Positions 2,498-28,148 of a DNA stretch of 64,000 bases are shown here, piece by piece (position 1 is the stretch's first letter; every line of letters begins with the position of its first letter). Location of the stretch: NCBI RefSeq assembly GCF_964204865.1, contig NC_135252.1:14818001-14882000 (forward strand), written 5' to 3'. The notes below the pieces were generated by a model that ran no database searches, was not told where the DNA came from, and saw nothing but the letters and a program-made list of their open reading frames with translations. Made by a program: the position numbers and the translations under genes. The stretch comes from Styela clava. Lineage: Eukaryota.

Positions 2498-5400
2498 CTA
2501 GCCATACATTTTTTGAACCATCTCACTTATCAGTGCTATACTTTCTTCACACTTATCTAGTCTCTCATTGAAATCTTTTAAGCGTGAAATTCTTTCCGAT
2601 CTGAATTTCAGTAATACGAGTAAAATTTCTTTAATCTCAAGCGGTAGTTCCATGTTCATCCAGTATCCTTCTTCTAAACTGAAATTTATATCCGGAAGTG
2701 GGCGTACTTCCGTGGTACCGTCGTCATTAAACCAAATGTCATAAACAGATGCAGAAATGATAATCCCAGGCCCTTTGCCACACTTTGCATTAAAATTTGC
2801 TTGATCTTTATAGTGCTCTTCCAAAGGCAAAGATAGAGGTATTAGTTTAACCACGTTCTCACGTTTTGCAAACAATTTTGGTGAGGGTTTTGTCTTCTCC
2901 CGTGATTTCTTTAAAATTCCCTTCACCTCAATCGTGGATTCCTCCTAAAATGCAGAACATTTTGCAATGAAAGGATTCATACTCCATCTACTGTGTATTA
3001 TTATAATATAACGATATATATTCCAAACCTCACCTCATCGGTACATGTATTGGTATCATCATCAACTTCCAAGTCAATGATGTCTTCTTCATTCGGTGAT
3101 TGGTTCTTGTTTGTTGATTTTTTTCTGTCCTAAAATATTTTAAATACAAGTATAAATATTATTTTAGATGAAATAAAAAAAAGTATTACATGATAAAATT
3201 TTCTGATTTTTAATCGCGTTGTACCCCCCAAAGTAATAAAAAAAAAGTGTTCATAAAAACTTTCACCTAATATTTCACTTATTTATTTCTTAGTGGTTTG
3301 AATATTATGATATTCTCCATGCTATAGTATATATGAAACGTTAGTCAAATGGTAAAAATTATTTAAATTCGTGATATTTCTACAAAATTTTTTATTGAGA
3401 CATTTACGCATCGATATACCCTTGTTTTTATCAGCCAAGTTTTGTATCTTCTATCCTTTTTTGCTGTTTCTTCATCTTCTTGCACCTTCTTTTGCCAATG
3501 AACTGATTTAACGGTTGAGAATTGGAGCTGAAATAAGGTATTGGCGCATGATTTAATGTACGCATGGAGTGGAGTGCAATAGACTTATAAAGTTGGTAAA
3601 GTTTAGAATTAAATCGCGATATGAAAAACTCGAGTCAGAAGTGTAGCGTGTTAGGTAAAAACAAAAATTAAGATGAATGACTGATTAAATTGAAACATTG
3701 GTGGAAGCTCAGATATCAAGATTCTTAAACGGATCATTGGTCTATGACTATGTAACTTTATTATTATTAAGTGGATGGTAAGCATCAAATAATTGTTGAA
3801 AAAGGGGGGTCAATTATCCAAAAAGAAGACGATCTGAAGAGTACGTCATCATATTTATGCCACAATGTGGGAGTATTTTAAAATTAATAATACCTTTTTT
3901 GTTAGATCGAAAGATAACTGAAAAGTTCGAAATAAAGTTCGTTGTATATCCGTGTACAGCTTCATCGCATCAAGTACTTCTTCTCCGCGAATTATTTCTA
4001 AGTCGACATAAGTCAAAGCATGAACGGCACATTCGCTAACGTTAACACCTTTTCTTCGTTTTGATTCGGGACCCCAAAATGTTGTTCCAAAGCTGTCGCA
4101 AGATTCTGTTATTGTAAAATGAAAAACCTGTAATTTTCACATAATAAAGAAGGCAGTTTTGTGGGTTTTCTTTGCTCTTTTTTTGATTGTATTCAAAAAT
4201 GATCACAACCAATGATTTTATCACAACCAATCGATCTATTATATATACTTTCTACGTTTTTCAAAATCTGCTAATCAGTGTTCACTATTAGCGCACTTTT
4301 TTGCGAAAATTGCGAAGCACTTTCGCAACTTTTTTTAGGGACTGCGAAATAGCACTTTTTTCCGATTTTGAAGAGAAATAGCACTTTTTTCCGATTTTGA
4401 ATGGAATAAAAATTCAAAGTTAACAAATATTTTCGAGTATTAAGTTGACAAATAAGTAACATACTAGTACTTTTGTAACTCAGTTCTGCATATCATAACG
4501 ATATTCACCGGAATTCTAACCTATGAGATGCAGACATAGCTTTTGCATTAACCGCAAAATTCTTGTTTATAATATGATTATTATACAAGCACAGCCGATT
4601 CCGCTTCTCCCGCAAAAAACGCTCCAAAATGACTATAAAAGTGTTAGTAACCTGTTATAGTCACTTTGGATGAATTGTGACCAAACTGCACGATTTTCAA
4701 ATCAGAGGAAACTTTTAGCAGCATGTCACAGATTTGCAAAATCAACAAATTCACAAAATACCATTAAGTGCCATTTTATTGTAATCACAATGTTGAAAGA
4801 ACGTGGCATTTTCCGGAATTTTGCGATATTTACACAACTATTTCTCATTGATATGCGAGGACGGGTGGGCAAAATTCAATATTTTTTTGAATCGAATATT
4901 TTTAAGGAGTACCAAATAAACAAGGTGAAAACATTAAAAAATCGGCAACAAAGCCTTTTTACTGGTTAATTCCGTTGTAATCGCTAATTGTTCTTGTCAC
5001 CGATCGTTTTGGCGGCGATATCCAGGTTTTGGGTAATCTATATTCCCGCCCTCTCTTTTTTACAAATATGAATTCTTGTGGGTCGGCGGACATCGAAGTT
5101 TTATATTTCGGGTTTACCCGTTCGTTCACATCGGAAACAGGTGTTGAAGACATTGAGGACTCAAATTAACATTTGCGTTGGCTTTAATATTACCTATCAA
5201 GATTTGTAAATTTACCGTCCCGATTTTATGCGAATGGTAATATTATTGTCCATACCGTGAGGCAGATATTTATTAAGCCGATAATTAACTTTCTCACGTA
5301 TTTCTATGGTGATAAACTTCGCAAATCTGAAATTGTGCCAATCCTGAATATTGATTTGAAATAGTGATCGAATAATTCGGCTATAAAGGCATTTCTGCGT

Positions 5401-8400
5401 GGTCATAAGACGAGATGACGTTAATGAACAGCACTTCTTTTACAGTATATTTTACGTATGCGACTTAATGCTGAAAAGATTGGGCTCGAGTGCCTAATAG
5501 AGGTCAGGCGCTAATTGTAACTAATTCCCCCAAGTTTCAACGTGTTTTCAACGAAACAATACCCCGGCGACAATTATAGCTAAAATGTTACCGAGCAATT
5601 CACAATTTTATTTATGGAATTTGCAAATTCACCAGTTTCTTGACGATTTTGATATTGTCACGCCCTAATTATTAGTGCAAAAAATACTCCCCTTATTCCG
5701 CGGCGGTTTGACGGGTTTTTTGTTCCATTCTTCAGAAAGTTCTGACACCGGGATATAAAATACTGAATCCGGAGGGTTGAATCCCTGTCCACTCACTGGT
5801 GATTTTCCGTTTTGAAATGCGTGAAACATTCTGTATTTAAAATTAAATGACGTTTCGCGGGCTAGAGTTCTCCCCGAAAATGATGTGTTCCAGACGTTAG
5901 TTAGACGATAGATAAAACATTAGATTAATAATGACGCCCCGTTTTCGAAAATACAAAGTTATATCGCAAAAATGTGTTATGATATATTTGGAATGAAACA
6001 TTATTTACGGTTAATTCAGATCATATTTTACTCTCCATGACACCCGGTATCCGAAAATACAGTTGTATCTCGAAAAATGTGTTTTGTTACATTTAAAATA
6101 AAACATTTTTGCGATTAATTTAGATCATATTTTACTTTTCACTACACCAGTTTCCGAAAATACAAGGTTATATTGCGAAAATGTGTTTTGTTACATTTAA
6201 AGTAAAACATTTTTGCGATTAATTTAGATCAAATTTTACCTTTCACGGCAACCCGTTTCAAAAAATACAAAGTTATATCACAAAAAAATGCGTTTTGTTT
6301 CATTTATTTTGCATTCCAATAAAATACATATTTCCCCTAATTAAGGTCGTCGATGAATCTGTTCCTGCCGTTCAAGCTCGACACACGTTTGGACGAGTGT
6401 GGGGCGTTTTTTGGTCGACGATAAATTAAAAAGTTGCCACATGTTATTTGTATAACGATAATAACTGAAAATTAAGATTTTATAATAGAAGTGAATTTGT
6501 CTCAAGATGGTATTTTACGATTCCTGCCCACAGAAAATAAACACGCTGACAGGCTTGGTTATAATTGATATTCGTTTAATTTATTTTACACTATTATTAA
6601 ACGCGCCACACCAATTGCGACCATATAAATTGCAGTCGCATCGGTATGGACTGTATGTTTTTGGCGCTCTCACATTAATAATAATTTTCAACAAAACAAT
6701 ACCCCGACGGTCATTAAAGCTGAATTCGTTACCGAATAATCCCCATTTTTATTTACGGAATTTGCAATTTCAAGATCTCACTTGACGATTTTGATGATGT
6801 CATGCCCTAATTTTTACTGCTTAAATGCCTCAAAATACAACAAATGTAATCATTTTCGACGATAACAGGCGCAACAATTCGTAAACGAGCCGTTATAACG
6901 AAATTCGCGATTGATTTTACCTCTCTCTTGTTTACAATTTTAACATCCTGCCGGCCATGTATGGTCGAATAAAATGTTCACATATTCGAAACATGACTTG
7001 GCCAAGGATGGAAGGGATCACACTAAAGTGCTAATAGAAAGTACATACGCGAGGGTATGATATTAATATCGAGAATATTTGTGAGCATATCACAGGACGG
7101 AAATATTTTGCACCCGGCTGTTTGTTGGCAGAACAACGATACGCTAAAGTCAATTGAAGTATTTATTTATTATTTCACTTGCGAACATCGAGGTTTTGGC
7201 GGAATTGTACGATCATGTTGTCTTTCTTAAATAATAACTTTTTCAATAAATGTTCATTTTACTTTTGCGTCTTTATTATATGTCGGGTTTTCATTTATTT
7301 TAAATTCGAAATTGTCCGAAATACTCCAACAGGTGTTTAGGTACAATAATAATAGTACTTACCAAAGTACTTACCAGGGAAGTTTAATACACACGATGTG
7401 TAAAGGGCGTCGTAACTCCCGTTTATTAATTATAAATTTTTTTACATTTTGCCCAAAAAACAACGGCAGTCATCTCACGTAACTCTCGCGACCAAATCTT
7501 TTTTGTTTTGTATGGCATGTCTTGGCGACGAATTTATTGCCGACTGAATTTTAATTGTGTTTTAGGATAAGTTATTTTCTGTTTGTTGGTTTCTAAACTT
7601 TACAAACTTGGGTAGCAATTACTATTAATGTGAGATTTGTGCATATGAACGATTGAATATCGTGACTGGATGTCTATGGTGGCCCATCGTTGTCACGCGT
7701 AAAATTGAAAATAAAAAATAAAATAAAAAACCAAAAATAAAAAAATTGTTGTGAAAANNNNNNNNNNNNNNNNNNNNNNNNNNNNNNNNNNNNNNNNNNN
7801 NNNNNNNNNNNNNNNNNNNNNNNNNNNNNNNNNNNNNNNNNNNNNNNNNNNNNNNNNNNNNNNNNNNNNNNNNNNNNNNNNNNNNNNNNNNNNNNNNAAG
7901 GTTGACAACGATGGTCCGCCTCGTGGCCCATCGTTGTCACGCGTTTTTATTTTTAGAAAATTTGCTTCTGCTTGGGACCAACGTTGTCAGGCATAATCCT
8001 ACGCGCACAATGTTCTATAAATTCTCCATGCTACAAGTTCAACAAGAAGTAATATATTTATAATAATGATAAGAGAATATAGAATTGAATACGAAAATTC
8101 GGAAAATTTGTTTTTACGTGTATAAGGTAATTTAATTGGAGAATGCTGCTTAACTACTCAGTTGGACAGACTGGACATTCGCGATGCCGGTACCGTACCG
8201 TCTTACCAAATACCGGTAGTCGGTTATAGTCGCTTTGCGTCTAACCGTACCGCTAGCCATACAATCACTCATGAAAGAATGGGAGATACGGATAGTCTCG
8301 TAGAATATAGACTACTGAAACACTCTCTGCGCCTGCCCCATACCGTACAGTCGTAACGTACCGATCCAGACAAATGATAAGTCGCCTGTGCTCAACCATT

Positions 8401-11400
8401 TATTTCAATCCATACCTCGATCCTAGTAGAATATAGTGAGTCGAGGTATGGATTGAAATAAATGGTTGAGCACGGGCGATTTATCATTTGTCTGGATCGG
8501 TACGTTACGGCTGTACGGTATGGGGCAGGCGCAGAGAGTGTTTCAGTAGACTATATTCTACGAGACTATCCGTATCTCCCATTCTTTCACGAGTGATTGC
8601 ATGGGTACCGGTACGGTCAGACGGTACCGTACCGGCATCGCACGAGTGTCTGAGCAGTTAAGCAGCATTTTCCAAGTAAATTACCTTCTACACGTAAAAA
8701 AAAATTTCGTATCCAATTCTATATTCTCTTATCCTTATTATAAATATATTGCTTGTGGTTGAACTTGTACCATGGAGAATTTATAGAACATTTTCATGTT
8801 GAATTTATTGGATATTGCTCATGAAAATCAGTAGTGAGTTAGAAACCCAGGAAACACATTTGTGCGTGTAGGATTAAGCCTGACAACGTTGGTCCCAAGC
8901 AGCATCAAATTTTCCAAAAATAAAAACGCGTGACAACGATGGGCCACGAGGCGGTCAGCAGCATTACAAAGAGTGCTATTTATGAATGCTGAAAGTACAT
9001 GACATTACTAAACATTTTGCCAATATATGATGTTTTCTGCTCGATTCAAACTAACTCCCACGCAAACCAAGGCATGTTGACATTTAAAAATTACTTGTCT
9101 TTGGGTAAGCTCTGAAATAGTATAATATAAATGTAAATGAGAAATTAGGTCACGCTAGCTCACGAAACGGGAAGATTTTCAAAGTGATCTTGTGTAATAT
9201 TTGGGAGAAAAAAGTTTGAAAAGAAAGTAGGTCGACCTATCTCCAAAAACAAGGGAGTATCCTGCTTACTATTTCGGAGGGAACGTAGGTTAACCTATCT
9301 TTTAAAACAGCGGGTGGCGGCGACTTTCAAAGTGGTTCAAAATCACAAATTAATAATTATCAGATTAAGTTTAGGGATAAATCGAAAAGTTAAATTTCCA
9401 GCGCACCTCACCCTAATTAGTTGATTGCTATTTATATTTGGGGGGGGGGGGGGTATTTTGCACGGGATTTGTATAAACGATCCACCCTGTAACTAATATG
9501 GTTTCCAGCCTGCCTCGTGTCTGTTAGATGGAAGGAGTAACAAATGTGAAAGTCTTTGCTGTTTACGCGAGTAAGCAACTGACACCGTGATACATTGCAT
9601 GAAAGTTTTGTCCGCTGCAGGTGTTAGCAGATGTCATTTTGTTGCCGATTCGCTTGTTTTAATTAAACATGAATTCGCCTGAAGGAAACTCAGTTAACGA
9701 AAAGGCTTCTCTTTAATTCATAATATTAACCGGAGGAGCGCTTTTTCGAGTATCTATGCCGTTTTAAATGGGTTATATGAAAGGTTAGGGCACCTAACTT
9801 GTTAAAATCGGCAAAAGCACTTTCGCACTTTTTTTTTCGACTGCGAAGCACTTTCGCACTCATAATTTGCTTAGAGTTAACACTGCTGCTAATGCTACTA
9901 ACCAACAAGACTGACAATTTGGTCATCTTGAATAATTTCCAGTGATCCTGATATAACAAAATATATGTATTCAATCTCCTCTCCCTTGTCAATGAGTAAA
10001 TCTCCAGGTGCAATATGGATTCTTTCCATTCTCGATGCGATATGTCTTGAACTAGTTTCAGACAAAACCTTGAACGCTGGTTGCGTTGTCATAACATGTC
10101 GGTGCAAATATACGCTGGCGTCGAGACGCATGTGCTCTGGTAGCCAGTCCAACACCTAGTTTTGGAGTAAGAAAAATAAAAGCACATGTTGACAACAAAC
10201 AATGCTCAATTATATATTTATAGAGTTCAAATGACTATAGTGAGATATGAAAATTGTCCAGTTAGCAACAACGTAGTAAGGAGATCTAAAGGATTTGTAG
10301 CCACTGTTAAGCTACTGAAATTTTAAAATTATGCTTCTGCTTACTCTCATGCTTTACTCCTAATCATATATCTTACTTATATATATTCGTTATTCTAACA
10401 TATCACTCCTATCTATATAAGACCAAAGATTTAAGCAACGTGAAATAGTACAAAATTATAGACATATATATTTCGAAAATTAGAGAGGTACTCCATCGCA
10501 CCTTTTTTTCACTTATTCCGTGCGTGGCTTTCCATGTAAAATACGCATAATCGTGCATTGAATCTTGCAAATGTTTTGGAAGTTGAAACAACTCCGAAAA
10601 TTTTACAATGGATGACATCGTCTCATTCAACTGCTCTTTTGTCGCACCAATGTTTTCCATAGCTGTTGTTACGTTACCAAGAATAGTTGCATATAAAAGG
10701 CCTGGTTAAAAAAGGTAAAATTTTGTTGTGAGGAAACAGTTTCATCAAAACAATACGGCCCCTTTTCGTGGTAAAATTGTGCATTTAGCACCAGAGAAAA
10801 TTTCAATTGAATAGAGTATAACAATCTGTAAATCGACACAAGTCTCCAAATTGACTTAAATTCGAATCTCAACTTTGAGTTGAAATGAAGTGATACTCAT
10901 AAAAGCCCACTCCAAAGACTATTTACATTCTATGTAAACAATAATCTCGACTCCAATTCCCGATCTCGAAGCATCTGAAATAAGTACCGACTTTGAGAAG
11001 ATGACTTTGAAACATTGACTTTCAGCAATGGAGAAGTTCTAAAATCTGGAACTAGGACATTAATATTGGGCACGCAATACTGTGAAAAAATCCTGTGTTT
11101 GAGATTGCTACTTTTACTATCCGCCAGATGATGCTATCGTACCGTATCATGGAACGTGAAAAGGACTGGATTCCCTGACTGACGTCACTCACGAATCGTG
11201 TGCCTGTGGCATATTTTGTAGCAATTATACATGACTTACATCCTACTAATAGAATGAATATGCAGAAAATCTGTTCGTTGTGCGTTTCTCCATATATGTT
11301 ACCAAATCCCTGAGAAATCACGGCCGTCATTGTGAAATATAGACATGATGAGTAAATACTTTGAAGTGGTGGACCTCCTGCTAACACATCTGAAATTCAA

Positions 11401-14400
11401 AATTATTTTAGGATAACAATGATCGCGCGTTGTGATAAATATTTATATATATAAAGTGGTAAAGATGATAAATAAGATTTTAACAAATGTGACACAAGGG
11501 GACACCCTATGTTATCTGTGTCGTATAGTGACAGTCACTGAGACCCGTGTATTTATAGGTAAGTAGGTGGTGCAGACGTCGCACTGGATATCTTGTCTAG
11601 CCAATGATGATGAAGAAGAATTCGATGAATAAGCTCGTTAAATCACGAATATTATTTATTAGTTTTATATTACCCTGCGACGAATCCCAATAATATTCAT
11701 TTTTCATTTGTTCTCCAAGTCGTACTAGCCAATTTTTAGGAACTTTCGGTCTAACCGGTGCTTGAGTTTTTTGTTTCTCAGCCCACGCCGTTGTTAAATT
11801 CTCAGCAATGTCTCTGTTCTGATTTCGTAACGGTGGTTCAACCGCTAATTCTGTTTCAATAAATATACCATTTCTATCTTTAAATATGTCATTCCAATTG
11901 AACAAGTTTCGGCTTTGATCATTTTCGATATGATTTAATCTTGGGTTAGGTGTTGTTGATAAAAGGACTAGCTCTCTCTGAGTTGTTAATCCCGGTTGCG
12001 TCGCTGTAATAGTAGACTGTGTAGCATCGATACTTTTTATATAATTCGCTGCATCTATAAGAGCGATATTGTACCATCCACAACCCATCCAATGACAGAG
12101 CAATAGGATAAGGCTCATCTGTAGAAATGATATATACACGTTCAATTCAATAATTCCAACATTGAAAAACATAACTTGTGGAATGTTACAAAAATTAAAC
12201 CATGCGGTACGTTATAAATATTTTTAGCTACAGTCAAATGAAGATAGAGGGCGCTGATGGTGCATATAAAAGGGAAAATCATCATATTAAAATGAACAAC
12301 ACAATGTTCAATCGCTCGTTTTCACGAAACTACCATTTGAGCGAAAGTACTGAATACATAAAATGTGAAATGTGATAGAAAATGCACTTGAAAATTTTCT
12401 TGACGTGAAAATTAGGATGAATTACATCATTACTAAAATTGATGCGCAAACAATCAATAACAGTTTATAAACAATCAAAATAAACCTGTTATTCTGGTAT
12501 TGTTGGTAAATCTAATCTCATTAACAAATACGTGACGAAGCATGAGTTATTCTAGTAATTATTAGGTTTTATTTGATTTTATCACCTTGTGTATCCATAT
12601 TAGGAATCTGCCGTCAGCAATTTATTACAATTATAGTGTTTGTGCAAAGATACTACATTTAAACTATATTGGATATTTACTCGAGTATATAAACAAAATC
12701 GTTTGTATTGTAATAAATAAATTATTGCTATTATAAGGAATTTAACTTATTACCAGTACAATAAGCGATGCATATGCATGTGCCAGGTATCGGTCTAGAT
12801 CACGAGCAATACGAAACAATCGAAATAATCGGAAAACTTTCATTGCTCCCAATAATTGTGCATTTGCCTGGAAAATAAACAATAAATAAAATGATAGCAA
12901 TTTTTGAATTCTAAATTTAGGACTTATAAAACCCATTATGATATTTTGGGACGAAATTTGACACCTGATGAAAATATCTGACGAGTTACAAAATTGCTGA
13001 TTCACGTAACAATAGATAAATCAAACTTTTAATAAAATGTACGACAGATTACTCTATTGTTGTCATTATGATGTCAATAAAAAACGTTGATGGAATGATC
13101 CCCCGACCAAAGTTGGTCCATTGCTAAGTTAATTCAGGTTCTGTGTATTATTTATGGGTCATACTTTTTCTGATAATATCGATTTCTTAATTTTAGACGA
13201 GTAATTTGTAGTAGTTTATAGCATAATTTACCACGCCTTAGTACGTCAGCATTAGACAATTTATAGAATATATTATAGAATTAGTGAACGAATTCTAAAA
13301 AATTCCTGGGCTATCAAATTTCAAATTGCGACCAATTCTGGCTTATAAGTGTCTTTCTACGTTGTATCGAACTAGATACTCAATTATACTGACCTTCATA
13401 ACCACAGATATTTATAGCAATACCAGGTAAGTATAGTATTAGAGTTCTTATGAATATTTCCATGTAAGGGAAAATCCAATTGTCCATCAGAGAGTGGGAG
13501 TAATATCTCAATACGAGTTTGCTAAGTCTCAAATTTCATCTCCCCAATTTAACACCAAAATATATCCCAAGGAACGATCGTTCTATTTTTAAAACTGCCT
13601 ACATGTTATCGCCTGGTCAGTTTATTAAAAGAGACTTAATATTAGATTTAAAATTACGGGGTTTTTAGTTTAGTTGTAAAGAAATAAAATGAATGAAGGA
13701 ATGACCTGTTATTTTAGATGATGAGTCTGGTATACATATAATGATGACACATTATTGAAATTTTGATCTGTATTACAAAAGCTGTGATGTCTAAATATTG
13801 CGTTAGAACGTGTGACACAAAGAAGTTTGACAAATATAAATGGGCTTTGTTTTGCTATTCTCCTGACATTAATGTGATTCAGAATGACAAGTTTCAAACG
13901 CTCGAATAACTTACGTCTTTCTGTGAAGTTGAATTATTGTTCAATTATCGCGTTATATCAGAAATAATTATTTTAAAATGACAAATAAAAAAGATAATTT
14001 TTATCACCCCAATACACTTCATAGTACATATGAAAATTAACTTCTTCATTTGTTATGTTTTGCTCTGGGATATGGACATTGACGATTTAAGCATAACAAG
14101 CTATTTTGTGGACGAGATCTGTATTTTTTTTTAATTAGGTTTTCATGCACATAGTCATGTCCTACCTAATTTTTAACCACTATGTGTATGCATAGTCATA
14201 AGAACCAAAAAATGAGACTTAATTTGTTATTGCAGAAACGAATAAGATTAACAATTTGAAAAATATTTACTAATTTGTGGAATATCGTTCAAATAATCAA
14301 TTTTTTATATGAGACCGATTAGAAATCTCACAACAGTAAATTGGAAAGTTGAACAGATTGGTACGTTTGCAATATATAAATACACCTGCTTACCTCAATA

Positions 14401-17400
14401 TCTCCAAATAATAAAGTGATCGCGTCATAAGGTATGCATGTCATCAAGTCCAACAAAAACCACGATTTCAAGTACTTTATTCTAATTGTTTTCAAATCTG
14501 TCACAATTTCACCTAAAAATAAAACAGCAAATGCTTTCTCGTGAATGTGAATTCTCTACATACAATTTATCACAATAGTGACAGTTGAAATTTTAAAGAG
14601 GCCGATGTTATATCACACTTTTGAACATGTCTTGATGAAAAGGGATATTGATTAACAAAAACACAAAAAATGCTACTGGTGCTAACGCCTATTATAACTG
14701 AATTTTCAATATAAATTGAACAATTGGGCCCATTCAGCATGGTAAGATCATAACAAATTTCTATACCATTATTTTTTATGTGACAGGGAAAGTGGTTTTA
14801 TACATTTTGTTGTTTAAGAACAATAATCATACATTTCGCAGTTACCCGCTACAGTTAAGATGACCTCAATATTTAGGAAGTAACATTTGGTGAGAAAAAG
14901 GTAACTAAACTGGGAAAAGTAAGTGCACGGAGACAATAATAAAAAAAAATCGTCCATCATAATTCATCACATAAATTAGTTAGAGCATAGATCAATTTTT
15001 CATATATGAACTTTGCCCCAGATACGTTTCTGGAATGAATTTTATCATGCAATGTCGAACGAATGCTATAAATAGATATGTCTTGTCATTCAAATTAGAA
15101 ATACCAACTAGAATAAAAGTCAAAGAAAAACGGAAGCAACCGGAAACGTCAACCCACCAGGTGTTATACGCACAACGTGACTAAATTGTTTTCAATTTTA
15201 CAAGAATTTCCCATAAGTCTAGCCGGGACATACATGTATAATAACGTTCTTAAATTGTGTCAGTTCAATCGAATGTGAATTGGATTAAAAATAAACACAA
15301 CACAATTTTGAATTTGTACCTACCTAGTCAATGAAAAGCTGATATATATATAGAGAGAGAGAGTACGATCGTGGCATTGTATGAAATAAAAACACATTTT
15401 ACAAATTTTCAATTTTATAAATTTCACAATGTGCAAGCTATGTTACCACAGAGATAGATATAATTCTGCCTTACTAATGAAAAAGTGTCTCTAGTAAAAA
15501 TTTCTGGATTCAAAACAATTCGTGATCGCTCGGCAACATCGCATGTATTTCGCTTTTCTTTCATTCAAGCGAATATAGTTCATAGGACTTCTTTGGATAT
15601 AACTCGCATGTAAAATAATTTTTATTTGATTTGAAAGCATCATAAAATGAAGATTGCCAAGATTTTAATTGATTTATAACAAAAAAATAAATAAGGAACA
15701 ATGATAAATTTGTTTCCTGTCTCGTTTGGTGTCATTAGTTGAAGGAATTACTACCGAGTTACGTCATAAGTGTGCAATTTATATTTTCAGAGTTGTCACG
15801 CATTACAGTCAATCATTTATTCTATAAATTATTTGTATAATTAGAATTTGGATCTGAAGAGAAATTCATTGTTACGGAATTAAACCATCTTTAGTCTCAG
15901 TTTGCCGTTTCTCAAAATTGTAATAAGAATAAAAAATGCAATCTTACAAAACTGGCATGATTTTACCTGGAGATTAATTTAAAGTAACGGCACAAGACAC
16001 ATTCAAATTGCTTGTAAAAGTATTCCGGCATACTATATTAAGATTGTAAGTTGGAACCTTATACAGTCTATTTAAAGTTGCCACGGCTATAAGTCATGCC
16101 GTAAATCCAGACTGGGTTTAAGCCTTCCTCCACCAGAGTCATGTCTTCCACTGGCTGGCGTATTGGGGGAGTTGCCAACACATGCCGTCTCTTGTGATCG
16201 AACTCTAAGCTTTATTGCAATGTTACTTGTTTTGTGTGGCCTTATTATGAGTTCACTTAATCAATAAGGCAATCAAGATATAATTTATATATTTATTTGT
16301 TATAGTCAGCACGTGAGCCAATTGTCTATGACCCTTTACGGTTGATAATTAGCCGAAAGTGAAAGTAATATCATCGTCGAGTGGTAAAGTTCGAAGCGTT
16401 CTACGTCACATTCGCGTGTCAGGACGATAAACAGCAGAATTGAGAAATTTTTGACAACAATGACTTGAGAAATCTAAGTGTTTTGATTGACGTCACGTTG
16501 ATTTGATATTTCCTGTCGGCTCGTGACTAACAATGTGATTAATATATTTCGCCATCGCCTCTTCAAATTCAATTTGAAATATTATTTTGAGAAGATTAAT
16601 GTTATTCACACTATCACCTTGAAGTACGATTGATTTATTGAAATTAAACGAGTAAGTTTAGTTTATTACTTCGATATTCGCGTATTTAGTGGATTAGAAA
16701 TGAACATTTTGAATGTTTATTATGGTGGGTACAATTAAGTCCAAAAAACTAATAGTAGATTGTCATTCCCCAACAAGTGGTAATTGGAAAACATAAAGTC
16801 ACGAAAAGACATTTGAAATCAAAGGTTTTTGTTCTAGCTAGTGATAACCAATTTGGAATTTAGAGCTCTGAAACCTTGACCTTTTAATCCGCCGATCGCT
16901 TTTAAATATTAATAATAAATATGATTTGATGATTGCACATTTTATATTGTATTTGATTTATTCGTGGAAAACGGTGCTTTTTGATTTTGATAACCTCTCC
17001 TTGTACCGAAACTAATTTACAGAGATAACTCAAAACACAATGAAAATCACATTGTTTCGAAAATATCAATGTTGTTATTTTCTTTGTTGAAACAAAGGAA
17101 ATTCACAAGAACAAAAACACCACCATTGATCAAATGACAAGATTAATGAAAACGGTCACGTTCTTATTAAAATAAATTGCTTAATTCGACAATTTTGGTT
17201 TTGGTCTTTGTGAATCACCAATTTTCTGGAAGCTAAAGCGTTTATATCTCTTCGTGTATGCGTAAAACCACATCACTCAAACTGTGAGGCGGGAAAATAT
17301 AAATAGTATTGGCTTTTGTTGGAACTCTTGATCAGGACACAAATGAATTTAAACCTATTTGCGCGGGATTATATATTACAGATACCTGACGCATATAGTG

Positions 17401-19491
17401 CTGGTGACTACTTTTAATCATTTATCCTTTAGATATACCTATTGCGTATGCAATATTTTGAAACGTTCCAACAGACTATACGCTTGTTCGAACCGTCAAA
17501 CGTAAGATAACATGTAATTGTTTTCACAAAATTGATAAAGAGAAAAAATAACGAGAATATTCTCTGGGCTTCTATAGTAAAATAACGAGTTTCTTATGTA
17601 ACAAAATGTAATGTAAAAGGTATGGATAAGAGTATAATAGTCACCAATGCTAAAATAGAATATTACCTTCCGATCCTGCCCTGGTAGTGTAAAAATTGAC
17701 GGTGACGTCAAGGATAAAAAATACATCAACCAGACTATCGACGATCAACCAGTTTTTGCTTTAGAAATAAATTAATAAAAATAAATAATATAATACTTTT
17801 TAAAAACGCTTCAGCATATTGCCACATTTTTTAAATGAAATCCAATTTTTAGTTAGGTAGGCAGGAAGGACGATTCACCAAATTCACCACAACTCAAAAG
17901 GCACATTGAAGTCGTTTACGGTAACTAATTTGGTTAGAGCTATGTGTACTTAGAATAAAAATTGGTAAAAAGGTAATCCAAACTGTACTGCAAATGTTAA
18001 AACTATTATTATTATTTGACAATTGACTATTGTCACGTAATCATCGTTTGTCTCGAGTTTAATCTTCTTCTTATTCAGCAAAAACATTAGATGTCAGTCA
18101 CGAGGAAATGGTAATGCAATTATTTTGCCTCATCACGTTTTCCCATAATATATTACTGCGACCATATTTCTTCGGGAATTTTTAAAATTTAGACTTTTTC
18201 GGTCCGAAATCACAGTATGTCTGGCGTGGGACATACATATGCAGGACTTAATGTGGTTGTCCATCTTTCGCCCATGCTAGAATTTATATAATACACGAAA
18301 CGTCGAATAACGAGACAAAATCAAATTAATACAAATGCGGATGAAGGATCTTACATCATCAAAGTAGTCGGGTCATCTCAAAAATAACGTTATCAATCAT
18401 CTCTGTAACCCGTAAAGGTCAAACAGTAAAATGAAATGAAAACTTTCCAGAATATATAATTTGAAACAGTTATTAATATAAACAATTTGTCGACAATAAT
18501 ATCAAATTATTCCAAGCTGCGATACAAATGTATTCTTATTCTCAGTCTAACAGACATAAACGATTTTAACACCTAAAATTTCCTGATACTATTCAGGTGT
18601 AATAAATTGGAAAGTCTATTCTGAACAGGTAAAGTTCTAGTTCCTTTATAAGCATGGCAGTTCAATACATATTAAGTGGCTTCTTCTCAAAGATATAAAA
18701 AATGGTAAGAACAAAAAAATGTGTAAATTTGAGTGGAAAAACAGCATTTACTAATATTCCATAATACCTTCTGTTCTTTATGTGAAATGCGGCAACCAGT
18801 GGAACCACGATAGCAGTATAGTACGTCAATGTTAGAACCACCCAGTCCCATGAAGTCTTAAAATCGCTGTAGTGCAAGATAATATTTGTATCTCTTTCTG
18901 GTCGTTCTCGTTTCGTCAGATCTTCTACCTCCTCTAAAAAGTTTAAGTTATCTATGTAGTAAGCTTTGCATTTTCAAGTAGGCTACTCCGAGTATAATCG
19001 TCTTTGCTAAATTTTCTGATGAGTGGGTTTTTAGTATTTTTTGAAAGAAGTTTGAGGGTTTTAACTGAATATTTAAATTGTTTTTATACGATTATTTATA
19101 TCTTTCTATGTCATCATTTTACGCTTGTTTATTAATGGGTACGAGTTTAAATTTTAAAAGTTAGTTTAAAACGTTTGGTACTAAAGTACCAAAAAAACTT
19201 GATTATTAGCGTAAGCTAATGAAAGTTCCAATTATAAAAAAAAATGACGATTACTCAAATATCTCGCCAAGTAAAATATATTTGACTGTGTATAACTAGT
19301 TTATTTTTTATCCTAATTTTTTATTTTATTTTTTCTATTCTTCAATCCATTCTACAATGCGTGAGAATTATCTATAAAATAATTGACTATTACCTATGAT
19401 TCATTGCCTTACCGGTTTCATTATTTTTAGTCAGCAATTTTCCGAATTTTTCTAAATTTTGCGTCTTGATTCCGCTTCCTGATGACGCCAT
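2498..19491 (-). CDS. eag: EAG/KCNH-family (Kv10-like) voltage-gated channel alpha subunit, divergent; 13 exons: 19413-19491, 18768-18951, 17667-17758, 14394-14512, 12754-12867, 11674-12118, 11240-11389, 10502-10701, 9903-10155, 3894-4105, 3420-3527, 3034-3129, 2498-2944 (2499 nt, ~832 aa)
   Basis: Manual splicing with GT..AG sites and matching phases gives one open frame. S1 IILHYSDFKTSWDWVVLTLTYYTAIVVP; S2 WLIVDSLVDVFFILDVTVNFYTT; S3 YLKSWFLLDLMTCIPYD; S4 MKVFRLFRLFRIARDLDRY; S5 LLCHWMGCGWYNIA; pore YSSCLYFTMTAVISQGFGNI; S6 LLYATILGNVTT. These are followed by a C-linker, a CNBH domain (HIAPGDLLIDKGEEIEYIYFVISGSLEII...VHALTYVDLEII...LSFDL) and a C-terminal coiled-coil-like segment. S1/S6 motifs are closest to the EAG subfamily. 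The first exon and start codon are the least certain parts. Confidence 0.92.
3894..4105 (-). CDS. KCNH exon 10 (second half of cyclic-nucleotide-binding homology domain); absent from the ORF track
   Basis: Acceptor ACAG| then (E)SCDSFGTTFWGPESKRRKGVNVSECAVHALTYVDLEIIRGEEVLDAMKLYTDIQRTLFRTFQLSFDLTKK, then |GTATT donor. The phase matches the donor at 9902. Matches the KCNH pattern 'G.GD.FG...V.ALTY.DL..I'. Confidence 0.9.
5555..6820. repeat. Diverged ~130-bp direct repeat pair (~5555-5680 and ~6693-6820) flanking a minisatellite
   Basis: AAACAATACCCCG...GTTACCGA...TTTATTTA.GGAATTTGCAA...CTTGACGATTTTGAT..TGTCA.GCCCTAATT occurs twice in the same orientation. Confidence 0.75.
5935..6310. repeat. 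Tandem repeat, ~104-bp unit, ~3.5 copies
   Basis: Unit core (G/A)AAAATACA...AAAATGTGTTTTGTTACATTTAAA.TAAAACATTTTTGCGATTAATTTAGATCA.ATTTTAC recurs at about 5948, 6053, 6157 and 6262. Confidence 0.9.
7758..7897. other. Assembly gap (140 N)
   Basis: Run of N; the motif GGCCCATCGTTGTCACGCGT occurs on both sides of it. Confidence 1.
7916..8954. repeat. ~1-kb imperfect palindrome (foldback/MITE-like element), arms ~500 bp, loop ~8421-8441
   Basis: The left arm CCGCCTCGTGGCCCATCGTTGTCACGCGTTTTTATTTT...TCAATCCATACCTCGA is the reverse complement of the right arm TCGAGGTATGGATTGA...AAAATAAAAACGCGTGACAACGATGGGCCACGAGGCGG. The right arm carries a ~60-bp insertion near 8795-8855. Confidence 0.95.
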
Positions 19492-23143: not shown

Positions 23144-24034
23144 TCAAAATCTAGGTAAATAGCAATGACATGCCACATCAACTTGTATCAGTTTTTCGTA
23201 GCACCCATAATTGGTACACTTGTCGAACGAAGGAATATACGATTTTCTGTAGATGACTGAAACGACAACAGGAATTGGCTTTGACACGCCATTCCACGTA
23301 TGTAGTCCAGTGTTTAGATCGATGCATCCTTTGCAAAGACAAGAAGCTTCAGTTATCACTTGCGGAAATCTAAAACAGAAAAATACACATATATTGGGAG
23401 GTAATCTTTGAACTTGAAAAAATGTACTCATTAATTTGATTCCCAATGAATTTTCTTAATTTGACCCCAGAAGTTGAAAATTCCTAAACTTATTTCGATC
23501 TGGCCTTTAACATATATGCCAACACAGATGATGTGTGATCATAGTATTTGTTCTGATTTATTGTTGATTGATCACTTTGTCCATTCTTTGAACACGTTAT
23601 ACCAACCTTGTTTCGTCGTAATGAGAACAATAATCCCACGGTGAGATACTCCTAAGATTTTCCTTCTTGACCCATTTCGGAAGATTTTCTCTGCAACTGG
23701 ATCTCGGTCTGCATCCGAGTGAACTTCCTACTTGATTATCCATTGTAATCAGTCTAGCCTGGAACACCTCAAACGGTTTAGCATAGGATGGTGCATCAGA
23801 ATATTTCTTGTAATATTTAATTCGTGGTCTCACTTTACCGTTCATCCTTATATTTGTTGGATTGTGAGCTACGCGTTGGCAAATACTTTTCAAATTTTGT
23901 GTCCTGAACATGTTACATTGCGACAGTATTGATGAATGAACTGGGACTTTACCCTTCGTGTATCTCTCAGTATAAACAATATTTCCTTGCATAAAACATG
24001 AAAACCCGAGGACTAAATGAATGAATTGATTCAT
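23144..24034 (-). CDS. IL17: IL-17-like cytokine 1; exons 23607-24034, 23144-23369 (217 aa)
   Basis: Signal-peptide-like MNQFIHLVLGFSCFMQG; RSISPWDYCSHYDETR|FPQVITEASCLCKGC...VACHC. These are IL-17 family hallmarks (RSxSPW, RxP, CxCxGC, terminal CxC). Phase-2 GT..AG intron. Confidence 0.93.
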
Positions 24035-24379
24035 TATATTTACGTTATTCTGAAACATGAAAAAGTATTTAAGTCTGAAAATATTTTACAAAAAGTTGAT
24101 AATATGATAAAACAACAAGAATAATACTCCTCCCAAAAATAAAAATCGAATAGGCCTTCATGAAAAAGGGATCACTAGGGATAACTTACAACAACTATTT
24201 GAGAACATATATATTCACAAATTGCACATTTATCAATCAGTAATCTGCGATTAAAAACGTATCGAAAAGTCACAATATCTGAAGCTGTAGTAATAAATAT
24301 ACTCTCAACAAAACTTTTAGTTTATGGAACAATTTTCGTCACCTATTGCTACAAACTCTCTGCATCATCTTCGCTTGGA

Positions 24380-27118: not shown

Positions 27119-28148
27119 ATGTACGCCCCAGATTATCTTCTCATTATATCCCTCTGTTGGTCAAGTTCGTTTGGAAAATTGTTACTACCAAAATTTAATG
27201 AGCGCATGTGTGAACAGTTCAAGACCGAAAAACTCAGAAATGCTTGTCAGCGAACTTACGGGAGTACCCATCATGCTCAGTTACAAAGTCATGCATACAT
27301 GAAATCAATGAAGGATCTATTTAAAGAGTATGAGGTTGGAAAATTCATGCTATCTGATCTTTCTACAAAACTTACGTCACACCGTCACCAACTCAGTATA
27401 CAACGAAATGATGCAGACAACGGGGTAGGCGTTTCTCTGAGGTGTCGAACAAATACTCCGTGTCCCATACCTCCAAACATTCCCCAAAATAAAGAAAACC
27501 TACGTAGCAGTGCTCCCTGGGACTACTGTTTACACTTTAAAGCTACACGGTAAGTGACTTAAAATTATTTCAGACTAGATATTCTGAATTCGAATTTTCC
27601 ATATCTACAGACATAATCATTTTAAGTTTTTAAGTCTAGTTTAAATCAAATGAAACCTACTACTTTGACTCGGATTTTCACATAGAATAAGAAATTGTTT
27701 TGTTAATCATGAGCTGCTGGCCTCATCTACTAACGCCTTGTCCGGAGCGTAATAGGTAAGGTAGGCAATACCTGAACATGAAAATTCCCCTCTTTTCTAA
27801 TTCAAAAGTGGCCCCAGAAGATAATTAAGATAAGCTAGTCACCAAAATTTGATTTATTTGCATCCAGCTGCCACGTCATTCCATATCTTTCAGATTTTAT
27901 TCTCTTTTTTAAGATTTCCGCAGTGGCTCAATGAAGCAGCATGTCTGTGTAAAGGATGCATTGATTTCAATACCGGACAACATGACAGAAACGTTGTATC
28001 TAAACCTGTTACAGTCATGATAACTGTTATCATGCGTTCACGTGCCATAAGCTCGTTTGCGGAGTGTACAAATCTTACTTGCTGGGAAAAGCAAATTAGT
28101 GTAGATGTTGGATGCCATTGTCATATACCAACATGGCCGGAACACTAA
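27119..28148 (+). CDS. IL17: IL-17-like cytokine 2; exons 27119-27549, 27914-28148 (221 aa)
   Basis: Signal peptide MYAPDYLLIISLCWSSSFG; KENLRSSAPWDYCLHFKATR|FPQWLNEAACLCKGC...VGCHC; phase-2 intron. Confidence 0.93.

Follow-up and report, generated by a model that had tools for sequence, protein, structure and literature searches.

Exon organization and filter of a divergent KCNH gene

The 64,000-nucleotide (nt) stretch of the Styela clava genome analyzed here (positions 14,818,001 to 14,882,000 of contig NC_135252.1; referred to below as the window) carries on its minus strand a voltage-gated KCNH channel gene whose selectivity filter, S-Q-G-F-G-N, has neither Val nor Ile in second place within the signature (S/T)-(V/I)-G-F-G-N and retains G-F-G-N. 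The gene comprises 13 coding exons, running from 19491 down to 2498 with no internal stop codon. By tblastn, all exons in the window are 100% identical to the S. clava RefSeq protein P0381 (XP_039267571.2; 826 amino acids [aa]), and each of the 12 exon junctions has one GT-AG solution consistent with the protein numbering. The exons were searched singly, and full-length comparisons were made with public proteins; the S. clava RefSeq proteins were reached by a search of protein representatives with the pore exon and then by searches with the public proteins found.

The ATG at 19491 opens exon 1 (19413 to 19491), which encodes aa 1 to 26 plus one base. Exon 2 (18768 to 18933) carries the short N-terminus and S1, with no PAS domain ahead of it (Pfam), and is followed by exon 3 (17667 to 17758; S2) and exon 4 (14394 to 14512; S2-S3), the latter also supported by an RNA contig joint at 12866/14393. 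RNA contigs and alignment likewise support exon 5 (12754 to 12867), which encodes S4, and exon 6 (11674 to 12118), which encodes S5 and a long extracellular S5-P loop. Exon 7 (11240 to 11389), encoding the pore helix, the filter, and the start of S6, has GT-AG joints on both sides in RNA runs X5 and X8 as well as a PDB match. Exon 8 (10502 to 10701; S6 and C-linker) is covered by an RNA contig and a PDB match, and exon 9 (9903 to 10155), spanning the end of the C-linker and the first half of the cyclic nucleotide-binding homology domain (CNBHD), by an RNA contig and a Pfam cNMP_binding match on the exon itself (E = 2.2e-5). Exon 10 (3894 to 4105) holds the second half of the CNBHD and is succeeded by exons 11 (3420 to 3527), 12 (3034 to 3129), and 13 (2498 to 2944, with the stop codon); alignment shows that exon 13 encodes a C-terminal segment that the clade conserves, along with a terminal helix. 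Intron 9 (4106 to 9902), at 5,797 nt compared with 89 to 3,154 nt for the remaining introns, contains the only run of N in the window (7758 to 7897); reads accumulate and stop at 9850 to 9890, near its exon 9 edge, in the manner of a repeat boundary.

Reverse complementing plus-strand positions 11298 to 11321 gives GTG ATT TCT CAG GGA TTT GGT AAC, that is, V-I-S-Q-G-F-G-N. The codons quoted in the preliminary description of this locus are thus minus-strand codons given in plus-strand coordinates. In the numbering shared by P0381 and P0159, the corresponding protein from an older S. clava assembly, the motif extends from V362 to N369, with Ile363 encoded at 11316 to 11318 and Gln365 by CAG at 11310 to 11312. 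Exon 7 encodes ...YFTMTAVISQGFGN..., and the 49-aa translation of the pore exon (11241 to 11387) spans the pore helix, the filter, and the start of S6. A phmmer search of the PDB with these 49 residues returned KCNH1 as the top match (8eow; E = 4.6e-9), followed by KCNH2 and KCNH5, with "tavisqgfgn" standing opposite "TSLTSVGFGN" of the three channels' structures. On full-length hERG (8io4_A), residues 4 to 49 align without gaps to 603 to 648, so that the Ile falls on T623, the Ser on S624, the Gln on V625, and G49 on G648. Gln365 occupies the position of Shaker V443 and KcsA V76, the x of TxGYG, where the carbonyl lines filter sites S2/S3 and the side chain packs behind the filter. The S6 exon (10502 to 10699), which reads LLYATILGNVTT, matches KCNH1 over S6 and the C-linker (PDB; E = 8.3e-10), and its first 63 residues align to 650 to 712 of 8io4_A, placing the retained Tyr392 at Y652 and Leu396 (codon 10679 to 10681) at F656, where canonical Eag channels have Phe.

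Spliced RNA supports this reading of the locus. A single 3,491-nt contig of run X5 contains five GT-AG joints between 9903 and 14514, and run X8 contains four of these joints; both runs are labeled only "RNA?," and the absence of introns from their contigs indicates that they represent transcripts. The two runs come from different studies, both carry CAG at Gln365, and the only pore-exon variation in their contigs is a T>G change at 11331 (ACA to ACC, synonymous for Thr). The contig evidence for the pore exon consists of these two runs, as run X9 (labeled organism B) and raw Hi-C run X11 have zero depth there, and it consists of assembled contigs, with which rare RNA editing at CAG would stay compatible. 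Contigs of X9, a large run, are short and of DNA across window positions 9850 to 14600; they include introns and resemble the window at 90 to 99%. Several variants of this run recur in X8 and X11, and the sample may come from a close relative, be mixed, or be mislabeled. P0159 differs from P0381 at 11 of 826 residues and is identical to it in the pore exon. These 11 differences lie in exons 6, 8, and 13: four in the S5-P loop, three at the start of the C-linker, and four in the C-terminal exon.

The structural alignments bear out what the preliminary description had read from the letters, namely, a KCNH channel with Thr-to-Ile and Val-to-Gln replacements in the filter and Leu at the hERG F656 position, and the PDB matches together with the tree described below narrow its identity to the Eag subfamily. 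The argument that Val to Gln requires two nucleotide changes follows from the genetic code (GTN to CAR). A sequencing error, already considered unlikely there, is rejected, since the proteins of two assemblies and the spliced contigs of two studies share the codon. Beyond the pore exon, the gene is likewise intact, and it is transcribed.

An ascidian-wide orthologue group in the Eag subfamily

The replacement of the filter Val is shared by other ascidians, and the possibility that it is an oddity of Styela was rejected because the Ciona and Clavelina orthologues likewise lack the filter Val. All five S. clava protein entries read VISQGFGN in the filter and LLYATILGN in S6, and all three Ciona intestinalis entries and all six full-length Clavelina lepadiformis entries (one of them from an independent annotation) read VISAGFGN and LLYAAILGN. 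Relative to canonical channels, the clade thus carries L>V (at the position of Leu622), T>I, and V>A/Q around the filter and F>L in S6. The preliminary description had asked whether SQGFG is conserved in orthologues; the loss of Val is, while the residue in Ciona and Clavelina is Ala and Gln was seen only in Styela. Judged from these three species, either Ala or Gln may be ancestral at this position. Apart from these entries, two 101-aa fragments, P0007 and P0156, read VTSAGFGN and do not cover S6.

A maximum-likelihood tree of 24 proteins unites the three from ascidians in a clade (100/100) whose stem is very long (3.25 substitutions per column). This clade is nested in that of the Eag subfamily (100/100) and is separate from canonical ascidian Eag; the latter joins vertebrate KCNH1/5 (83/90). 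Styela is sister to Clavelina plus Ciona (99/98), in agreement with ascidian phylogeny, and the three species belong to three different ascidian orders. The tree contains long branches and one Erg row, and the point at which the clade attaches within Eag is not settled by it. An approximately unbiased test on a group chosen after the tree had been seen did not reject the grouping of canonical and divergent genes in one tunicate clade (difference in log likelihood, 2.5; P = 0.35), so duplication in the tunicate lineage followed by fast divergence is compatible with the data. What the data show is a group of orthologues spread across ascidians and lying within the Eag (KCNH1/5, Kv10) subfamily, of which the divergent gene is the expressed and intact Styela member.

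A sequencing or assembly artefact, or a decaying pseudogene, could in principle give rise to a long branch and a noncanonical filter, and the assembly gap within intron 9 might be taken in its favor. This explanation is already contradicted, and we give it almost no weight: the codon agrees between two assemblies and the transcript contigs of two studies, the 13 exons have clean GT-AG junctions and no stop, and orthologues in three ascidian species conserve the voltage sensor, pore scaffold, and CNBHD.

Elsewhere in the same 377-Mb genome, the 49-aa pore-exon query detected two further KCNH-type pore exons, both with the canonical TSVGFGN, and no fourth KCNH gene. One of them (L002; G000:C1:11646188-11646331) is Eag-like and matches P0329, the canonical Styela Eag, which is 35 to 46% identical to the divergent protein over the core; the other (L003) lies at G000:C2:18949145-18949285. 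A second, canonical pore exon within the divergent gene itself was considered and rejected, as there is one genome match at the locus and tblastn of the window with the full protein found one pore exon.

We surveyed the filter motif in 379 proteins, the search matches of this analysis, which form a redundant and nonrandom sample. Among 396 motif matches, 370 were (S/T)(V/I)GFGN, 6 were SAGFGN (all in the ascidian group), and 1 was SQGFGN; the remainder were mostly four-repeat channel-like proteins or chance matches outside the pore. Outside the ascidian group, the KCNH-type GFGN pores of this set have Val or Ile at the x position. SQGFGN was not found among the best 150 of 425 matches of the pore exon to protein representatives, which also do not include the Styela protein itself. 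Three proteins (P0012, P0022, and P0048) exceed 2,000 aa and were each matched in four stretches, so that they are probably four-repeat K+ channel-like proteins; their single repeats read TAGYGD, TTGFGD, SAGFGD, or STGFGD, indicating that non-Val filter residues also occur in single repeats of other channels.

RefSeq already holds models of these genes under automatic names (KCNH5-like, KCNH1-like, or eag-like; "uncharacterized" in Clavelina). Literature searches by motif and, separately, on ascidian and Eag channels, over papers outside subscription journals, found none on the ascidian clade or its filter among the matches listed, and "SQGFG" returned only papers unrelated to channels. The text passages available from a preprint on Kv channel evolution (10.1101/2025.09.21.677649) mention no tunicate Eag duplicate, and its tables or supplements may list such genes.

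Loss of the PAS domain and a longer S5-P loop

The S1-S6 layout is retained in the divergent channel (Pfam Ion_trans on P0159, E = 1.7e-26). Invariant across eight aligned proteins are the S4 basic residues K162, R165, R168, R171, and R174 and the acidic residues D89, D93, D99, D134, and D142 of S2/S3; the last S4 basic residue, Lys in canonical Eag, is Asp in the ascidian clade. G-F-G-N and the S6 Tyr are kept throughout the clade. The cNMP_binding score of P0159 (25.8 bits) falls just below the Pfam cutoff of 27.5 bits, which the Clavelina orthologue reaches (27.5 bits), and the CNBHD aligns with that of canonical Eag through the beta-roll. The terminal helix (aa 780 to 825; approximately 2504 to 2641) lines up with the coiled coil at the C-terminus of Eag channels and is also present in a low-confidence structure model. 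The S5-P loop is about 70 to 110 aa longer than in canonical Eag.

At the N-terminus, no PAS family was found at E ≤ 0.01 (Pfam) in P0159, P0158, or P0155, compared with a PAS_9 match at 2.1e-16 in canonical Styela Eag. Orthologues with a modeled N-terminus have just 44 to 85 residues ahead of S1. The X5 contig extends about 350 nt 5' of exon 4, and coding exons 1 to 3 require 337 nt, which leaves room for those exons only. A hidden upstream PAS exon was rejected, as tblastn found none on the strand of the gene in the window; the sole weak PAS match (E = 0.26) lies on the opposite strand at 27272 to 27427. The ascidian group has therefore lost the N-terminal PAS/eag domain and gained a long S5-P loop.

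Compared with the Eag channels KCNH1/Kv10.1, KCNH5/Kv10.2, and Drosophila eag, the ascidian protein is thus alike in its S1-S6 layout, S4 charges, G-F-G-N, S6 Tyr, C-linker, CNBHD, and C-terminal helix. It is unlike them in having no PAS/eag domain, a longer S5-P loop, and Asp in place of the last S4 basic residue, as well as Gln (Ala elsewhere in the group) for the filter Val, Ile at the T623 equivalent, and Leu at the F656 equivalent.

The window also contains two genes in divergent orientation, each with an Interleukin-17 domain, at 23147 to 24058 on the minus strand and 27119 to 28148 on the plus strand. The Pfam IL17 matches lie at 23147 to 23455 (E = 6.2e-12) and 27849 to 28148 (E = 1.3e-14), and both genes have an upstream exon-like open reading frame ending in ...NLRS(I/S)(S/A)PWDYC....

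Predicted consequences for permeation

The altered filter position has been studied in several other channels. Shaker V443Q ("D-SPARK"), which carries the same substitution as Styela, is a voltage-gated nonselective cation channel (PMC3622882), and Shaker V443A and Kv2.1 V378A are nonselective among monovalent cations and retain voltage gating (PMC4621747; PMC12658365). Ala and Gln, the two residues seen in the ascidian group, have thus each been shown separately to abolish K+ selectivity in Shaker. In hERG, V625A reduces K+ selectivity (PMC4121676). Natural replacements are found in UNC-58 of Caenorhabditis elegans (TCGYG), which is Na+ permeable and depolarising (PMC11513965), and in TWIK1 (TTGYG), where T118 allows Na+ to permeate when K+ or pH is low, an effect that T118I abolishes (PMC12658365). 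The preliminary description had put forward altered ion selectivity or inactivation as one of two outcomes, and this branch has, by analogy, direct experimental backing in other channels.

Given the intact voltage sensor and the presence of the same substitutions in voltage-gated channels that have become nonselective, we lean, with confidence a little above even, toward a depolarisation-activated, weakly K+-selective monovalent cation channel with little C-type inactivation as the best reading of the Styela protein. The protein would still tetramerise and open on depolarisation. With the filter Val replaced, the carbonyl cage at filter sites S2/S3 would be destabilised, and Na+ would no longer be excluded, so that opening of the channel would depolarise the cell or hold a plateau rather than repolarise it. 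If K+ selectivity was given up in the ascidian ancestor, as we propose, drift from one to the other of Ala and Gln may since have been unconstrained at this position. The broader proposal, that the group represents an old, conserved ascidian Eag-derived channel that is opened by depolarisation and passes both Na+ and K+, a natural counterpart of D-SPARK and the first depolarising member of the KCNH family, seems to us evenly balanced between being right and wrong.

Several points weigh against a weakly selective channel. The function of the Styela protein and of its orthologues is argued by analogy only, and the closest experiments were made in Shaker-type pores; within the KCNH family they comprise V>A alone, for which selectivity is described as "reduced," not lost. 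Compensation is plausible, in that L>V, T>I, and F>L covary and could together restore a K+-selective filter, and some K+-selective channels, such as TWIK1, tolerate residues other than Val or Ile here under normal conditions. An AlphaFold model built from an eight-row alignment (mean predicted local distance difference test score [pLDDT] of 50, predicted template modeling score of 0.27, and pLDDT below 50 for filter residues 365 to 369) was judged too poor to inform on filter geometry. Finally, the 15 exon variants, scored singly, comprise 8 synonymous and 7 nonsynonymous changes, which is only modest evidence of constraint; the nonsynonymous ones fall in exon 4, in the part of exon 6 encoding the S5-P loop, and in exon 8 where the C-linker begins, and the pore exon has none.

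In an alternative that we consider unlikely, though deserving of attention, the protein is still a K+-selective delayed rectifier. Here the space behind the filter would be re-packed by the accompanying changes, in which Leu622 is replaced by Val, T623 by Ile, and F656 by Leu, together with the pore-helix Ala/Cys. The filter could then accommodate Ala or Gln, and the substitution would mainly remove C-type inactivation or alter pharmacology or gating kinetics. Such co-adaptation predicts what is seen in all three orthologues, where T>I and F>L are fixed alongside the replacement of Val. hERG V625A still carries measurable current, and attenuation or loss of inactivation is its best-documented effect (PMC4564290); TWIK1 has a polar Thr here and is K+ selective at normal K+ and pH (PMC12658365). 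Against this alternative stand the abolition of selectivity by both Ala and Gln in Shaker and by Ala in Kv2.1, the lowering of selectivity by Ala in hERG, and the presence of Val or Ile in the other KCNH-type GFGN pores of the 379-protein set.

Kv5, Kv6, Kv8, and Kv9 are silent subunits for Kv2, and the divergent protein might similarly be a silent or modulatory subunit, nonfunctional as a homotetramer, that coassembles with canonical ascidian Eag (P0329, at L002) and tunes its selectivity, gating, or trafficking. Styela retains such a partner, with TSVGFGN and a PAS domain, the divergent protein keeps the C-terminal helix matching the coiled coil of Eag in the alignment, and very long branches like that of the ascidian clade are frequent in silent subunits. 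Loss of the PAS domain, however, removes an inter-subunit contact of Eag channels, core identity to canonical Styela Eag is 35 to 46%, and BLASTP returned no significant alignment across the region of the C-terminal helix. One study describes partial mitigation of Kv2.1 V378A by wild-type subunits (PMC4621747), which is in keeping with a modulatory role, and on the whole we regard coassembly of this kind as improbable.

A weakly selective channel opened by depolarisation would resemble the Shaker V443Q and V443A, Kv2.1 V378A, and hERG V625A mutants in the position affected, in the two replacement residues, and in voltage gating, which the mutants retain. Those mutants are single changes, man-made or pathogenic, in otherwise canonical channels, and only V625A belongs to the KCNH family; in contrast, the ascidian change is natural, is retained in orthologues of three species, and is accompanied by other changes in the pore. 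UNC-58 and TWIK1 share with it a natural replacement at the x of TxGYG and, if our reading is correct, Na+ permeability, but they are two-pore-domain leak channels that are not voltage gated, the alteration affects just one of their two pore loops, and Cys or Thr, rather than Gln or Ala, is the residue found there. HCN channels, which are weakly selective between Na+ and K+ with a GYG-type filter retained, belong to the same cyclic nucleotide-binding domain channel superfamily (PMC9614928). They differ in being opened by hyperpolarisation, in their CIGYG filter, and in forming a separate branch, whereas the ascidian protein is placed within Eag.

Taken together, the ascidian gene is an Eag-subfamily offshoot that fails two hallmarks of its family, the PAS domain and the filter Val, and that probably works, by analogy, like the known cation channels mutated at this Val. 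K+ channel filters are among the most conserved of motifs, and natural departures from them are rare and have repeatedly led to unexpected physiology, as in HCN, TWIK1, and UNC-58. In the present case, the departure is found in a voltage-gated KCNH channel that has been retained in three ascidian lineages beside a canonical Eag gene. If our reading is correct, a family regarded as purely repolarising would gain a depolarising member. The channel would also offer a natural test case for how selectivity and inactivation are set by residues behind the filter, and it would be a new contributor to excitability in the invertebrates most closely related to vertebrates.

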